A DNA stretch of 9,219 bases from IMGVR_UViG_3300020479_000030:1-9219; one strand, 5' to 3'. Shown: positions 3,382-9,219, counted from the first letter of the stretch. The notes: a model not told the origin generated them from the sequence alone. A program made the numbers and translations.

Positions 3382-3396
3382 AAAAAATATTTTTTT
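3382..3396. terminator. Palindromic bidirectional terminator AAAAAATATTTTTT between convergent genes
   Basis: Perfect 14-bp palindrome (3382-3395) between the stops at 3372 (+) and 3395 (-). Confidence 0.6.
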
Positions 3397-3958
3397 AGCT
3401 CTTTTTCTTTTCATCTTTCTTTTCTAACGGGTTATCAATTGGGGTCTTTTCGATATTTGTTGACTCTAACATTGCATTTTCGAATATTGATACATCGGCT
3501 TGGTTTTCTATAGCAGTTCTCCAAGCTAAAGTTTTTACTAAATTCCAATTATCGTTATTTATTTGCTCATCCAATGCATCAATAGCACCCATGGATGCTC
3601 TCAATTTCTCATACTTTTTTGCTAAATCTGTCCTTATTCCTATTGCTCTAACATCAATAAGGATTCTGTGCCCTAAGGCTGTAGGGGTCTGATAAACTAA
3701 CATATCTACTAACAACCCATACATTTTTAGGTTATCTGCTAATGCCCTTGCATAATTTTCTACTCTTCTCATCATATAGCCAATTACCATAGAAATATTG
3801 TTTCTAATATTCATTCTGTTTATAGACTCTATATCTAGAAAATTTGCATGCAAACCTTGCCCGACTTCGTCATCTGCTAGAATTTTTGGCGCAGTTTTTA
3901 CAACTTTTTTCTCATTATTCTTCTGTTCTGTATTTTCATCTTTGTTATCCGATTCCAT
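3395..3958 (-). CDS. Hypothetical 187-aa protein with charged, probably disordered termini; likely paralog of 4688-5026
   Basis: Clean ORF with a TTTATTT box about 24 nt upstream (leaderless); 53-aa gapless similarity to the 112-aa ORF. Confidence 0.8.
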   Translation of the reverse strand: MESDNKDENTEQKNNEKKVVKTAPKILADDEVGQGLHANFLDIESINRMNIRNNISMVIGYMMRRVENYARALADNLKMYGLLVDMLVYQTPTALGHRILIDVRAIGIRTDLAKKYEKLRASMGAIDALDEQINNDNWNLVKTLAWRTAIENQADVSIFENAMLESTNIEKTPIDNPLEKKDEKKKS

Positions 3959-3979
3959 AATTTAATTTACGTGGTTTTG

Positions 3980-3995
3980 CGAAATAAATATTTCG
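3980..3995. promoter_or_regulatory. Perfect inverted repeat CGAAATA-aa-TATTTCG overlapping the TATA box of ORF187; putative operator
   Basis: Arms at 3980-3986 and 3989-3995; the minus strand reads CGAAATATTTATTTCG. Confidence 0.55.
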
Positions 3996-4079
3996 TTTAT
4001 GTTATCGGTTCTACTATTAATTTAATTTTCCAAAATATACGGATTGAAAGTAACAGTTTTTTTCTAGATTATAATGGAT

Positions 4080-4187
4080 TTCCTTATAGAATTCCAAATG
4101 GAATTGGTTAAGAAATTTGCTATGAAATTAGTTAAGAAAATGGTTAAGAAAATCGAATAAAAATTCCTTATAGAATTCCTTAGCAAA
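4080..4187. repeat. Degenerate tandem array of nine 12-bp units
   Basis: TTCCTTATAGAA/TTCCAAATGGAA/TTGGTTAAGAAA/TTTGCTATGAAA/TTAGTTAAGAAA/ATGGTTAAGAAA/ATCGAATAAAAA/TTCCTTATAGAA/TTCCTTAGCAAA; an exact 16-mer TTCCTTATAGAATTCC occurs at 4080 and 4164. Confidence 0.85.
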
Positions 4188-4195
4188 TTATTTAC

Positions 4196-4531
4196 CTAAA
4201 AAATTGGGGTACCGCTTGGTTTATTTTTTGACTTTTTCTTTGTAATATCTCTGTAAAATTGAGAAAATATCCCATCTGCTACACTTTGCCCTAATGCTTT
4301 CTTAAAATCTGTTACACATTGGTCAATAGGGTAATCTTTATTACAACTTGCTAACTGTGCTGATACTGCTTTACATATTTTTGTTAATAGAGCATCAAGT
4401 TCTTCGTCTGTCATGTTTCCGCTATAATACTCAGATGACACTCTTCTCATTAAAATCATTAATTGTGTCTCTTCGCTTTCCATTTGGCAATTTCTAAATA
4501 GATTTTGAATAAGTTGATTCATAGCCATCAT
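4196..4531 (-). CDS. Hypothetical helical protein, 111 aa, with 4 Cys and a basic C-terminal tail
   Basis: ATGA overlap with the upstream 48-aa RHH gene, GAGGAG/GTGA SD upstream; last gene of a three-gene minus-strand operon. Confidence 0.78.
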   Translation of the reverse strand: MMAMNQLIQNLFRNCQMESEETQLMILMRRVSSEYYSGNMTDEELDALLTKICKAVSAQLASCNKDYPIDQCVTDFKKALGQSVADGIFSQFYRDITKKKSKNKPSGTPIF

Positions 4532-4674
4532 GGTTGTTCACTCTCCTCTTTCTCCAAGAATTCTGTTATTATAATAAGTAATAAATCTTCAACAGTTACG
4601 CCTCTTTTATCAGCCAATTTTCTAAGCCTATCTATCAGAACAGCAGGCGCTATTATGTGTAATTCTTCTGACAT
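4528..4674 (-). CDS. 48-aa ribbon-helix-helix (CopG-like) protein
   Basis: Not in ORF track. MSEELHIIAPAVLIDRLRKLADKRGVTVEDLLLIIITEFLEKEESEQP*; AGGTG SD upstream, fills the gap between 4688 and 4531, and its stop overlaps the next ATG. Confidence 0.82.
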   Translation of the reverse strand: MSEELHIIAPAVLIDRLRKLADKRGVTVEDLLLIIITEFLEKEESEQP

Positions 4675-4687
4675 TTATTTACACCTA

Positions 4688-5026
4688 TTAGCTATTCTCA
4701 TTTTCACTATTAAAATCTTCATAAGACTCGGTATCTACTTCTTTCAGCCTTTGAAATCTGAGTGTGTGTTTTTCTAGGTCTTGGATTCTATCCTTCTTTA
4801 CGGCTGTTACTTCTAGATGTATTACGATATCTATTCCATTATCTTTCCATTCTACTTTAGTAGTTGTTGATATTAGAATACCGCTCTTTTGCATGTACCG
4901 AGATACAAAATCCGCGTAATTGCTTATTTGGTCAGCTTTAGCTCTGAGAATTTCTAGTAATGCATCTTTTGCTTTTTCACTCTCTATGTCTTTTACGTTA
5001 ATGAATTGGCTACTCATGTATTTCAT
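4688..5026 (-). CDS. Hypothetical 112-aa alpha-beta-beta-alpha protein with an acidic tail; likely paralog of 3395-3958
   Basis: First gene of the minus-strand operon divergent from the MCP genes; TTTATTT box about 27 nt upstream. Confidence 0.8.
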   Translation of the reverse strand: MKYMSSQFINVKDIESEKAKDALLEILRAKADQISNYADFVSRYMQKSGILISTTTKVEWKDNGIDIVIHLEVTAVKKDRIQDLEKHTLRFQRLKEVDTESYEDFNSENENS

Positions 5027-5200: not shown

Positions 5201-5557
5201 ATGGCTATATCCCACACACTAGAGGAAATGGTAAGCAAATACACAGCGAAGATGAACCCCCAACAGGTCGGTAGCCGTTATCAGAACTCTAAGACGGTAG
5301 CAGTAAATAGATATATGCAAGGATTCTACCCATTCATGGCTGTAATACCCCTAGTAAAGAACATATTAGAGTCTAACGGTGTTTCCGCAGGCAAGCAAGG
5401 GCAATACTTCGCTTTTGTATTTCAGTTAGTAAAAGAAGCACAAAAACACAGCCTACAAGAATTAGCTAATATCAGCGCAGGTTTACAACAAAAATTCACA
5501 ACTGAAGGATGCGACCCATCAATATTAAGTAAATTAGCTAACCTAGTAGTAGGGTGA
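5201..5557 (+). CDS. Major capsid protein 1 (SIRV2/AFV1-fold, A-DNA-coating helical capsid)
   Basis: Nearly gapless alignment with the downstream MCP (MAI, KY..K, KNIL...G...G..G.Y.AF..Q, DPS.L...A...G); pattern matches the rudivirus/lipothrixvirus coat protein four-helix bundle. Confidence 0.88.
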   Translation: MAISHTLEEMVSKYTAKMNPQQVGSRYQNSKTVAVNRYMQGFYPFMAVIPLVKNILESNGVSAGKQGQYFAFVFQLVKEAQKHSLQELANISAGLQQKFTTEGCDPSILSKLANLVVG

Positions 5558-5570
5558 GGGGGTGAAATAA

Positions 5571-5945
5571 ATGGCTATAGTTAAAAATCTGGGTCAAGCA
5601 GTAAACAAATATCAATTGAAATATGACGGTACGAATGTAACTAATAGGCTTACGGCGTTAGGTAGCCTAGTAGAAGAGAACTACGAAACCGGCGTTAGCG
5701 TTACTTACAATGCTGTAGGTATTGCTAAGAACATATTAGCTAACTTAGGAATTCCGCCAGGTCACTGGGGTTACTACATAGCATTTGCAGAGCAAGTAGC
5801 AAGATATACCGTACACTATGGTGGACAGACACTACAACTTAGAGTTAGTGCATTAATGTCCTACTACGTAACAGCATATCAAGCTGACCCAAGCGTTTTG
5901 ACTCAAATAGCCCAGGCAATTATCGGAACAGCACCACCTTACTAA
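5571..5945 (+). CDS. Major capsid protein 2 (SIRV2/AFV1-fold)
   Basis: C-terminal LMSYYVTAYQADPSVLTQIAQAIIG resembles the recalled SIRV coat protein LKGYYISAFNANPQVLDAVVNIITG; strong GGGGGTGA SD. Confidence 0.9.
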   Translation: MAIVKNLGQAVNKYQLKYDGTNVTNRLTALGSLVEENYETGVSVTYNAVGIAKNILANLGIPPGHWGYYIAFAEQVARYTVHYGGQTLQLRVSALMSYYVTAYQADPSVLTQIAQAIIGTAPPY

Positions 5946-6000: not shown

Positions 6001-7071
6001 ATGCGAAAAGTCGCAGTAGTTACATCTCCGTGGTCGGTTTCTCTTCAGAAAGTATCACGCTCTATAGCCCAGGTTTTCGATGAAAAGAAAGATGAATTAA
6101 ACATAGATGGTACTAAGCTGTTTTTATCACAGCAAGTTTCGCCAACAGAATACCAAGACGTAGATTTAGCTATAGTAGTCATGACTTTTGACCCGCTCTT
6201 CGTAAAAGCTTATGCATTTATTGTTTATTACCTACAACAATATGGGAAAAAAGCGATTTTCTACACTACAACTGAAGGAAAACTGCTACCGACGGATGGA
6301 ATTGATTGGATAAAAAGAGAAATTGTTCCTTATGCAAATTCCGAGTACACAAAAGAAAAGCTAATTAAATATGGCATGAGAGTAGCTGGGGTAGTGTACC
6401 ATGGAATTGATTTTCAAAGATTTCAAAGTTACCCAGACGCAAGACCGCTTATTCGTGAACAACTAGGATTGTCAGAGAATGACTTCGTAGCAGGATATAT
6501 AGCTGGGTGTTATTCTAGGAAAGGTCATGATCGTTATGCTGAAGTCATAAGACAAGTATATAAAAAAGACCCCTCTATCAAATTTGTTGTTCTTACCACT
6601 GATAAGTGCGCTAAGCATTACGATGGCGTGCCTAACACTGTCGTAGTAAGTGATTTCGGCAAGCTTGATGACGAAGAGGTAGAACAAATGTATCAAGCTT
6701 TTGATATTTACGTGCATGCTAGCCTAAGTGAGGGTTTTGGATTGCCAGTTTTAGAAGCGTTAGCGTCAGGATTGCCCGTAGTGCACACTGATTATAAGCC
6801 ATTGAGCGAAATAACCACTAAGGAAACTAGTTTCAGGGCACCTACGCGTTTTATTTCTTACATACAAGAAACCGGCGCAATAAAATACGAATTGCATTAC
6901 TACAAGATTGATGAATTTGTTGATGCAATATTAAAGGCTAAAGAAGCAGTGCTAAGTAAAAAAGAGTACTATAGAGAAAAAGCATTGGAAAGGGCTAAAG
7001 AATTCGATATACATAAGGTTTATAATGCCTTTGTGCAATTATTAAATCGAGGAGAAACTAAACATGAGTGA
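6001..7071 (+). CDS. Glycosyltransferase, GT-B fold, family GT4 (Glycos_transf_1); probably virion protein glycosylation
   Basis: VVYHGID, RKG, and YQAFDIYVHASLSEGFGLPVLEALASGLPVV (E-x7-E motif); GT genes next to MCP genes are typical of Ligamenvirales. Confidence 0.95.
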   Translation: MRKVAVVTSPWSVSLQKVSRSIAQVFDEKKDELNIDGTKLFLSQQVSPTEYQDVDLAIVVMTFDPLFVKAYAFIVYYLQQYGKKAIFYTTTEGKLLPTDGIDWIKREIVPYANSEYTKEKLIKYGMRVAGVVYHGIDFQRFQSYPDARPLIREQLGLSENDFVAGYIAGCYSRKGHDRYAEVIRQVYKKDPSIKFVVLTTDKCAKHYDGVPNTVVVSDFGKLDDEEVEQMYQAFDIYVHASLSEGFGLPVLEALASGLPVVHTDYKPLSEITTKETSFRAPTRFISYIQETGAIKYELHYYKIDEFVDAILKAKEAVLSKKEYYREKALERAKEFDIHKVYNAFVQLLNRGETKHE

Positions 7072-7372
7072 AGAAGAAAAAACTAGAAGTAGAAGTAGAA
7101 GTAGATCAAATGAAAATGCATCACAAATGGTAGCACCAATGCCGGAACCAACACCGGAAATAACTGAAGAGCAAAAGAAGACACTACAGATAATGAATGG
7201 GTTAGTAGCTGACGGGCAAGATTTAACTACAATTCTAGTATTTGTTCAAAAAGATATACCTAAGGAAATATTTGACAAATACCCCATCTTAAATGAGTGG
7301 TTAGATGTATCAATGGATATAGCAAAACTAATTCATGATTTGCATAAACTAGTTAAAACTAGGGTAGGTTAA
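7064..7372 (+). CDS. Hypothetical 102-aa protein with an N-terminal RS dipeptide tract and helical C-terminus
   Basis: GAGGAG SD, 8-nt overlap with the GT gene; RSRSRSRS encoded at 7085-7108. Confidence 0.78.
   Translation: MSEEEKTRSRSRSRSNENASQMVAPMPEPTPEITEEQKKTLQIMNGLVADGQDLTTILVFVQKDIPKEIFDKYPILNEWLDVSMDIAKLIHDLHKLVKTRVG
7085..7108 (+). repeat. Hexanucleotide microsatellite (AGAAGT)3-AGATCA
   Basis: Directly visible; in frame, encodes (RS)4. Confidence 0.8.
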
Positions 7373-7768: not shown

Positions 7769-9219
7769 ATGAGTAGTGATAACTCTAAACTTGAGTTATT
7801 CACGATAGACGATATTAACTTTATACTTGATGCCATACACAAGGCTAATGCTGACTCTGACGAATTCATAATAGTACCTGAAGGTTTCAGCCTTGATGAA
7901 ATGGCTAGTGCATTACATGGTATCACTGACCCTATAGGTCAGATAGAGAGTTGGCTACAGAGTACGCTTAACCAAATTGCATCATGGCTAACTTCAGCCG
8001 TTTCAACAATGTTAAGCCCATTTGTTTCCGGTGTACAACAGTTCCTTAATGGAATAGTAAGTACATTAGAGAGTATTCCACAGTTGTTCACGCCAATAGG
8101 AGAAGGATTTGAAGCAATAACGAATTGGCTTAGTAGCTTCTTTACAAATCTACAAAGTGTTCTGAGTAATGCATTTCAGACGCTAGGCGTTACTTTAGAG
8201 AAATTCTTCAAGCCCGTAGGAGAGGCATTTTCAAAATTAGAGGACTTTATTACTAGTTTTGTAAATAAATTTGGTGATCTGATAAAGACCGCTACCGGTG
8301 ATTTGCAAAAAGGTATAGAACAAATTATAAAGCCAATAGGTGACGCGCTATCTAAATTAGGACAAGGAATTGAGAACTTTTTCGGAAATATCAGTAATAC
8401 ATTAAAGGCTATTGTCAGCGATTTGCAAAAAGGCTTAGAGAGTGCTTTAAAGCCTATTGTAGATACATTAACTAAATTAGAAAGTGGAATAGAGAACTTT
8501 TTCACTAAATTTGGAGATACACTAAAGACCATTTTCGGTGATATCGAAAAAGGCTTAGAGCAAGTGCTTAAACCTATATCTGATGCTATAGCCCATTTAG
8601 AACAAGGAATAGTTCAATTTTTCGGCGAAATTGGTAATACATTAAAGCAAATTTTAGGCGGAATTCTACAAAAAGTATCTAGTCTATTTGAAGATTTTGT
8701 AAATGTATTTAAAACCTTTGGTAAGGATATATCTGACTTCTTTACTACCTTTGAAAAGAAAATAGCAGGGATATTTAGTAGTATAGCCGATGACATAAAG
8801 AAGTTTTTCGAACCACTAACAAATGCGTTTAAAACAATCTTTAAGGATGTTGATACATTCTTCGGAAACCTTGGTAAGGTATTCAAAGAAGTTTTGAGCG
8901 ATATAACTAAAGGGATAACTGACTTCTTTAAGCCCGTAGTTGACTTCTTTACGGGGTTATTTGATAAGATTACTCAATTCTTTAAGCCCGTGATAGCGTT
9001 TTTCGAAGGGGCATATGATAAGCTTAAAGAGGTATTTTCGCCACTTATACATTTTTTTGACGTATTAGGGAAAGATATAATTGACTTCTTTAAGAACCCC
9101 GCTGGAACAATAAAATCATGGTTTAGCGATATAGGAAAAGATATAGAAAACTTCTTTAAGCCGGTAATTGATGTCTTCAAATTTGTATATAACGGAATTG
9201 AAGATGTAATAAAGAGCCC
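7769..9219 (+). CDS. Large amphipathic-helix repeat protein (>=483 aa, 3' end outside window); tape-measure/apolipoprotein-like
   Basis: Not in ORF track. ATG 7769 with a GAGGAG SD, open to the window end: MSSDNSKLELFTIDDINF...KPIGDALSKLGQGIENFFGNISNTLKAIVSDLQKGLESAL...KPVIDVFKFVYNGIEDVIKS. W/F residues recur at 11- and 18-residue spacing. Confidence 0.88.
   Translation, partial: MSSDNSKLELFTIDDINFILDAIHKANADSDEFIIVPEGFSLDEMASALHGITDPIGQIESWLQSTLNQIASWLTSAVSTMLSPFVSGVQQFLNGIVSTLESIPQLFTPIGEGFEAITNWLSSFFTNLQSVLSNAFQTLGVTLEKFFKPVGEAFSKLEDFITSFVNKFGDLIKTATGDLQKGIEQIIKPIGDALSKLGQGIENFFGNISNTLKAIVSDLQKGLESALKPIVDTLTKLESGIENFFTKFGDTLKTIFGDIEKGLEQVLKPISDAIAHLEQGIVQFFGEIGNTLKQILGGILQKVSSLFEDFVNVFKTFGKDISDFFTTFEKKIAGIFSSIADDIKKFFEPLTNAFKTIFKDVDTFFGNLGKVFKEVLSDITKGITDFFKPVVDFFTGLFDKITQFFKPVIAFFEGAYDKLKEVFSPLIHFFDVLGKDIIDFFKNPAGTIKSWFSDIGKDIENFFKPVIDVFKFVYNGIEDVIKS
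8090..9219 (+). repeat. In-frame coding repeats: seven 120-nt (40-aa) units, then 54/54/54/66/54-nt (18/22-aa) units
   Basis: Unit starts at 8090 (TP), 8210, 8330, 8450, 8570 (KP), 8690 (ED), 8810 (EP), then 8930, 8984, 9038, 9092, 9158, 9212; recurrent TTCTTTAAGCC and GATTTGCAAAAAGG DNA motifs. Confidence 0.88.

Follow-up and report, generated by a model that had tools for sequence, protein, structure and literature searches.

A conserved 12-bp tandem array beside a fast-evolving gene in an uncultivated Ligamenvirales-like virus

The contig IMGVR_UViG_3300020479_000030 (9219 bp), which was analysed in its entirety and which we call the window, is part of the genome of a filamentous archaeal virus that has not been cultivated and that its genes identify as Ligamenvirales-like. 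It encodes two tandem capsid proteins, a GT1 glycosyltransferase, an Hjc resolvase and a ribbon-helix-helix (RHH) protein. The capsid genes encode the Sulfolobus-virus coat fold, and the deposited viruses that best match the second major capsid protein (MCP2) are rudiviruses, with an identity of about 30%; a DNA search of phage records with the whole window gave no match. Upstream of the capsid genes, a tandem array of 12-bp units separates two minus-strand genes. Judged by comparison with related sequences, this array is real, 12-bp-periodic, non-coding, conserved and constrained, and it is tied to a fast-evolving neighbouring gene. The locus contains the following features.

3395-3958, minus strand: variable gene (187 residues), directly downstream of the array in its own direction of transcription
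3959-4195, no strand: intergenic gap of 237 bp, the longest of the window
4068-4079, no strand: weak leading unit ATTATAATGGAT, with 6/12 matches to the next unit
4080-4199, no strand: core array of ten contiguous in-register 12-bp units, consensus TTnnTTAnGAAA
4080-4095, plus strand: exact 16-mer TTCCTTATAGAATTCC, copy 1
4090-4105, no strand: exact dyad AATTCCA-aa-TGGAATT, which resembles the mini-ORB core TTCCAGTGGAA (ORB, origin recognition box) but has one extra central base
4164-4179, plus strand: exact 16-mer TTCCTTATAGAATTCC, copy 2, 84 bp (7 units) from copy 1
4196-4531, minus strand: conserved gene of 111 residues, with its stop codon inside the last array unit
4528-4674, minus strand: gene for a weak ribbon-helix-helix protein (Arc/CopG-like, 48 residues) in the operon that ends at the array; candidate binder
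4688-5026, minus strand: gene of 112 residues, first of the operon and paralogue of the variable gene
5201-5945, plus strand: capsid genes MCP1 (5201-5557) and MCP2 (5571-5945), 118 and 124 residues, Sulf_coat_C, about 1 kb from the array

The units start at 4080, 4092 and so on to 4188. Units 1-5 read, in order, TTCCTTATAGAA, TTCCAAATGGAA, TTGGTTAAGAAA, TTTGCTATGAAA and TTAGTTAAGAAA, and units 6-10 read ATGGTTAAGAAA, ATCGAATAAAAA, TTCCTTATAGAA, TTCCTTAGCAAA and TTATTTACCTAA. With the register moved on by one base, the unit resembles TCCTTATAGAAT and fits the skeleton of the clade, TYTnTAnrAAAn. Over 4068-4199, identity at lag 12 is 0.65, compared with 0.314 +/- 0.039 in 1000 dinucleotide shuffles (z 8.6), none of which reached 0.65, and the signal has harmonics at lags 24, 36 and 48. 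Tandem Repeats Finder also reports a period of 12, and the Fourier peak of the array lies at 12.2 bp. An unbiased 96-bp sliding scan returned the array as the top lag-12 segment of the contig (0.68), with a maximum of 0.51 anywhere in the contig for 21 control lags. Two exact matches of the 16-mer were found where 0.16 were expected, and the copies enclose central GTTAAGAAA-type units. A sequence-only reading of the window had described nine units at 4080-4187 with two flanking units, had placed them in the longest intergenic gap and had noted a near-perfect dyad at 4090-4105. These descriptions are correct, the dyad being exact on inspection, and the lag-12 signal stands well above shuffles.

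Two open frames run through the array.

4074-4160, plus strand: ATG open reading frame (ORF) of 28 residues (MDFLIEF...), in phase with the units
4064-4186, minus strand: open frame of 40 codons that continues the frame of the 111-residue gene past its TAG stop

These frames raise the question of whether the array is a coding repeat of four residues, read either as an amphipathic micro-protein of 28 residues or as a C-terminal extension of the 111-residue protein. The ATG ORF is exactly in unit phase, its residues follow the pattern hydrophobic, hydrophobic, any, charged, and a TATA-like AAAATATA lies about 35 bp upstream of it, while the minus frame stays open and continuous with the 111-residue gene after the TAG. 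However, any repeat whose unit lacks a stop will maintain an open frame by default, which deprives the two frames of value as independent evidence. Wherever a relative has a complete array, its plus frame contains 2-9 stops (1 in the partial array of L009), the minus frame contains 2-5 stops in L003, L004, L005 and L007, and no frame is stop-free through the arrays of all lineages. The sole small ORF of L003, the closest relative, sits in another frame relative to the units, and in the window the 12-bp repeat runs on in phase beyond the TAA stop of the 28-residue ORF. Since its frame is closed by stops in relatives, the ORF is not a conserved gene, and we judge it to be an accident of the repeat. 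A coding role is effectively excluded and, at the level of these sequence comparisons, the array is non-coding. The sequence-only reading had called it so from the window, which did not by itself make the point evident; comparison with relatives bears it out.

Searches of a 5.8-billion-protein database with the 187- and 111-residue proteins returned self matches only, and scans of IMG/VR with single proteins or with the 111-residue alignment returned only the window itself. Relatives were reached through MCP2, which led to eight at 65-86% identity, and two more loci came from a metagenome scan with the 111-residue alignment. Nine arrays were compared, namely that of the window and those of the eight related loci that cover the gap. 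All eight have a 12-bp-period array downstream of the conserved 111-residue gene. The layout is common to each covering locus: the variable gene (minus strand), a long gap, the operon of the 111-, 48- and 112-residue genes (minus strand), then MCP1, MCP2 and the glycosyltransferase gene (plus strand). The gap measures 237-342 bp in all relatives in which both ends were seen. Among 38 lags tested, the top lag is 12 or 24 in the first seven gaps; the gap of L013 is led by lags 36, 24 and 12, and that of L014 shows a near-tie of 11, 12 and 24 with lag 11 marginally first. Lag 12 or a multiple of it is thus on top in 8/9 syntenic gaps. The strongest lag-12 segment of every contig falls in its gap, and the signal is missing from two contigs without the gap. 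The Fourier peak falls at 12.0-12.2 bp in seven of the nine arrays; the remaining two are led by the second harmonic (5.9).

The period noted in the window is therefore found at the syntenic site of all eight covering loci, with unit sequences that differ. The unit type is TTnnTTAnGAAA in the window, AnnATATAGnAA in L003, TCTGTAnnnnAC in L005, TCTGWAAARAAC in L006, TCTCTAnAGnAC in L013 and TTTnAAAnGAAA in L009 and L014, and the gaps are unalignable between lineages. Pooling 84 units yielded the skeleton TYTnTA..AA, with T1 at 76%, Y2 at 80%, T5 at 64%, A6 at 74% and A11 at 82%, and with A10 also favoured; position 7 is free in all lineages. Per-position information is correlated between lineages, the correlations being mostly positive and individually weak, and the register of the units relative to the stop codon of the 111-residue gene shifts by 0 or 1 in most pairs. 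The window, L003, L005, L006 and L007 all come from metagenome 3300020479, and L002, L004, L009 and L012-L014 come from a second metagenome, ERZ1684502. At least five distinct members of the clade were thus found in one metagenome and several more in another, each with its own array sequence and variable gene.

Two close pairs are alignable without gaps across the array. Array identity is 125/156 (80%) in L004/L007 and 74/83 (89%) in L009/L014, versus 63% at third codon positions of the flanking genes in both pairs (Fisher p 3e-4 for each). The copy number is 9-13 units in each lineage seen in full (10 in the window). Higher-order repeats of 24 bp (L006), 36 bp (L013) and 84 bp (window) point to in-register duplication and turnover of the array. 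As read from these alignments, the array is constrained in the short term and undergoes concerted turnover in the long term.

More distant relatives (MCP2 36-51% identical), drawn from IMG/VR and from one metagenome-assembled genome labelled Thermoprotei, define where the array is missing. No lag-12 array was found in L026 or in 15-20 kb of L019, L021 and L025 (15-18 kb of partial genomes for L019 and L021), and the complete genomes of AFV1 and SIFV contain no internal non-coding 12-bp array. L026 keeps the gene order Hjc, 159-residue, 111-residue, RHH, 112-residue, MCP1, MCP2 and glycosyltransferase. Its 159- and 111-residue genes end 32 bp apart, which leaves no gap, no array and no variable gene. 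The RHH gene and the two capsid genes, by contrast, occur whether the array is there or not. The variable gene was found only where the array was found, both being present throughout the close clade and both missing in L026, and this co-presence and co-absence mark the two as a clade-specific module. SIFV (L017) has a 578-bp gap at 9437-10014, SIFV0020/SIFV0021, with a weak lag-12 signal (0.52).

The variable gene evolves fast, with products that are 17-30% identical between lineages. On alignment, it is a diverged paralogue of the 112-residue family: the two families align colinearly, and the variable gene matches the L026 gene at the 112-residue position with 43% identity over 54 residues (E 2.5e-8). 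The variable gene of L003 (L003:383-1054) contains an internal duplication of a RIENFAR...G segment.

Two further landmarks lie in the gap to the left of the array.

3979-3994, no strand: dyad CGAAATA-aa-TATTTCG, 21-36 bp upstream of the ATG of the variable gene
4037-4045, plus strand: 9-mer ATACGGATT, 43 bp left of the array

The dyad at 3979-3994 is a perfect 7-2-7 with the same geometry as the dyad within the array, and by position it is probably the TATA region of the variable gene. The 9-mer ATACGGATT also occurs 37 bp left of the L004 array (L004:4480-4488) and, with one mismatch, in L007 (L007:498-506); it has no counterpart in the remaining lineages and is a weak common landmark in otherwise unalignable gaps. 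In the clade with a 131-residue MCP2, a conserved block AGAAAAGAAAAAGA..TCTTTACAAAAA follows just past the stop of the 111-residue gene (L005:3196-3239, L006:2542-2585, L009:108-151, and beside the same stop in L013 and L014). The block, T-rich on the transcribed strand, is probably the terminator of the operon. It is missing from the window and from L003, whose arrays abut the stop codon.

Elsewhere in the window, the apparently empty left 1.2 kb is occupied by a minus-strand ORF of at least 406 codons (1-1221), truncated by the contig edge and without a Pfam match. Positions 7769-9219 (plus strand) hold the start of a very large gene that runs off the contig and whose L002 version (L002:2723-8524) encodes 1934 residues. 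This gene is coiled-coil-like (Baculo_PEP_C, E 8e-16), its antisense strand yields several long spurious repeat ORFs, and in relatives it contains lag-21 and lag-33 periodicity. A 102-residue protein encoded at 7064-7372 (plus strand) has an N-terminal SRSRSRSR tract, the product of a perfect TAGAAG hexamer repeat at 7084-7105. Rfam gave no match at gathering score in the window or five relatives, and a tRNA scan was also empty.

We next consider what the array does. Because the period is kept in all close relatives though the sequence differs, a landing strip for a DNA-binding protein is the most likely explanation. The form of it that we favour, with a probability of roughly 40%, is that a protein lands on the array as on plasmid iterons or centromeres, and that the array makes up one module with the downstream variable gene. 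Iteron arrays are recognised by at least four head-to-tail short direct repeats in non-coding DNA, and there are 10 here and 9-13 in relatives. The array would be the cis-acting half of a clade-specific two-part module, and the variable gene would be the other half. A virus-encoded, oligomerising DNA-binding protein would load on the 10-13 head-to-tail 12-bp sites with one protomer or dimer per unit, so that an unbroken nucleoprotein filament would cover about 120-156 bp. The product of the variable gene is the first candidate for this binder, and the second is the 48-residue RHH protein, whose operon ends at the array. By analogy with the iteron/Rep and centromere/centromere-binding-protein modules of plasmids, such a complex would regulate the neighbouring gene, and it could also have a part in genome maintenance (replication start or segregation). 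Binding specificity would diverge quickly between co-resident relatives, and the array would grow and homogenise through in-register duplications of 12, 24, 36 or 84 bp. That a protein binds, which protein it is and what follows for the virus are our inferences.

Plasmid systems offer close parallels. R1 parC consists of ten 11-bp iterons, and pBtoxis tubC is built of 12-bp iterons. The standard arrangement at tubC/TubR-type centromeres is that tandem iterons precede the gene for the protein that binds them, and R1 parC/ParR and tubC/TubR share with the present locus short head-to-tail repeats, contiguous or in blocks, upstream of a gene that in the plasmids encodes a small DNA-binding protein (PMC6009700). 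Such repeats are expected to carry one dimer each in a cooperative coat and to act as a regulatory site as well (PMC6009700). Unlike the plasmid centromeres, however, the array belongs to an archaeal virus with a linear genome, has no motor NTPase visible in the window, and consists of units whose sequence turns over between close relatives. A second parallel is provided by the iteron/Rep systems of theta plasmids, in which a tandem array also stands beside a fast-diverging gene; the co-variation of the two among relatives that share a habitat recalls incompatibility determinants. Typical theta-plasmid iterons are 17-22 bp, though, and the present locus lacks a Rep-like fold and an AT-rich DnaA-box region, the neighbouring protein having instead a predicted helix/hairpin/helix fold without known relative.

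The candidate binders were characterised from their sequences and predicted structures. The 48-residue protein has a PHROG Arc-like match (E 7e-4), sub-threshold Pfam RHH_1 hits in four orthologues and a match to pRN1 ORF56 at E 0.15; sequence searches of the PDB gave nothing useful beyond this last, marginal match. The 112-residue/variable family is predicted to form a helix, a beta-hairpin and a helix, in confident models (predicted local distance difference test, pLDDT, about 80). For the 111-residue protein, whose sequence contains four invariant cysteines and ends in a basic PSGxxI(F/L) tail, the predicted structure is a four-helix bundle (pLDDT 79). A fold search with the 111-residue and 112-residue/variable models found no significant PDB or BFVD match. 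The sequence-only reading had offered, as one option, an iteron array for an RHH protein. The iteron half of that proposal fits better than the capsid nucleation weighed below; the array, however, follows the variable gene in its occurrence and not an RHH gene.

Several observations weigh against an iteron module of this kind. The RHH assignment of the 48-residue protein lies below Pfam thresholds, the RHH gene is retained in the array-less L026, and the variable/112-residue family is without a recognisable DNA-binding fold. No partition NTPase (ParA, ParM, TubZ) or Rep initiator was found among the proteins of the 9.2-kb window with Pfam and PHROGs, an absence that, the contig being a partial genome, is not proven for the virus. 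The array starts 110-140 bp upstream of the ATG of the variable gene, which is beyond the usual distance of archaeal repressor sites. Motif copies elsewhere in the window are not above chance and do not recur in other promoters, and dispersed operators across the window were rejected on the same count. Finally, recent recombination, rather than selection, could be partly behind the identity of the close pairs.

Three other explanations of a non-coding array deserve weight. One, which extends by analogy from related virions, is that the MCP1/MCP2 heterodimer preferentially binds the 12-bp-phased array and starts helical assembly there, so that the array would be a nucleation and register-setting site for the A-form nucleocapsid. 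Each capsid dimer covers 12 bp of A-form DNA in SIRV2 and AFV1, as the sequence-only reading had rightly stated, and the AFV1 nucleocapsid has 93 repeats of 12 bp per 10 turns, or about 112 bp per turn (PMC5517147). By the AFV1 numbers, every 12 bp correspond to exactly one turn of the DNA in the lattice frame; each dimer would thus meet the same face of a sequence with a 12-bp period. The array period of 12.0-12.2 equals this footprint, arrays of 120-156 bp are of the order of one nucleocapsid turn, the period is kept while the sequence drifts, the capsid genes are about 1 kb away, and the literature searched contains no account of a packaging signal in these viruses. The tobacco mosaic virus (TMV) origin of assembly, which is 3-nt-periodic, and nucleosome-positioning sequences likewise have a period equal to the coat-subunit footprint or lattice repeat; unlike the TMV origin, the array is double-stranded DNA rather than an RNA hairpin and is missing from relatives in which the capsid protein is conserved. 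Its absence from L019, L021, L025 and L026, whose capsid proteins are homologous, and from the complete AFV1 and SIFV genomes weakens the case for a general capsid-nucleation signal, and nucleation, if it occurs, would have to be a lineage-specific solution. The units are also rich in A/T tracts, which are the most A-form-resistant DNA on A-philicity scales, and where contacts between capsid and DNA are known in these virions, they involve the backbone and not the bases. Nor does the rest of the genome carry a 12-bp lattice: base autocorrelation outside the arrays of the window and its relatives peaks at lags 12, 21 and 33 and not at 24 and 36, which indicates the 3.6-residue alpha-helix coding periodicity of a largely alpha-helical proteome and rules a genome-wide lattice out. 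The lag-12 excess outside the array, a check named by the sequence-only reading, is therefore a coding signal. The pseudo-dyad of its proposed landing strip did not hold either, being nominal in the window virus (p about 0.03) and absent in relatives, and dyad symmetry of the unit was rejected as a conserved property. Of the proposed capsid nucleation or phasing, the period match thus stands and the general signal finds no support, and we consider such a role unlikely.

We regard it as similarly doubtful that the array is a neutral minisatellite, a functionless by-product of a 12-bp indel process in the only sizeable non-coding stretch. As the sequence-only reading had noted, 12-bp indels are documented as common in rudiviruses and lipothrixviruses (PMC4390879), and the array shares with these Ligamenvirales indels the unit length and the virus order; its apparent growth in 12-bp steps resembles the indel process. 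The differences in unit sequence between lineages and the ongoing in-register duplication seen in the 24-, 36- and 84-bp repeats fit this explanation, as do gap lengths that differ by exact multiples of 12 (237 vs 273, 330 vs 342), although a gap of 313 breaks the series. The described indels, however, are scattered and mostly inside ORFs, whereas here a tandem array is fixed, conserved and constrained at one intergenic site. Close-pair alignments contain no 12-bp indels, and orthologous proteins differ in length by numbers of residues that are not divisible by 4. Moreover, the array exceeds third-codon-position conservation in both close pairs, every clade member seen in full keeps 9-13 units though the gaps are otherwise unalignable, and the same unit positions are conserved across lineages. 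Repeated 12-bp duplications, as first suggested from the window, could thus plausibly account for the growth of the array and do not explain its maintenance. More improbable still is a replication origin in which mini-ORB-like boxes recruit host Orc1/Cdc6, with TTCC...GAA boxes flanking an AT-rich centre. In Pyrococcus, a mini-ORB is a box of 13 bp in which TTCC and GAA are invariant (e.g. TTCCAGTGGAACT), and clustering of such boxes leads to cooperative Cdc6 binding (PMC1904270); the array is likewise a cluster of boxes of about 12-13 bp, some of them with TTCC and GAA cores. Window units 1, 2 and 8 read TTCC-N5-GAA, unit 2 (TTCCAAATGGAA) equals the mini-ORB core plus one extra central base, two TTCC-box pairs bracket about 60 bp at roughly 20% GC, and the window contains no visible initiator gene of its own. 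However, the N5 spacing is one base off the N4 of TTCCAGTGGAA, only 3/10 units fit, and the relatives, with units of TCTGTA or TTTGAA type, all lack TTCC...GAA. The boxes are direct rather than inverted repeats, there is no G-string and no adjacent orc1/cdc6 gene in the window, and the distant relatives, which also need an origin, lack the array.

We know of no cis-acting packaging, replication-start or segregation element that has been defined within the genome of any filamentous archaeal virus with two capsid proteins. The array is a compact, conserved candidate of about 120 bp, with a fixed 12-bp step, natural variants in at least five co-occurring relatives and a period that matches the one structural number known for these virions. 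If the capsid heterodimer proved to be the binder, this would explain genome choice and phasing, and nucleation at the array would provide the first known packaging signal for any Adnaviria virus and a rationale for the long-unexplained 12-bp indels. If the binder is instead the product of the neighbouring gene, as in the iteron module that we favour, the locus would represent a new plasmid-like specificity module in archaeal viruses and would give a role to an orphan protein family.

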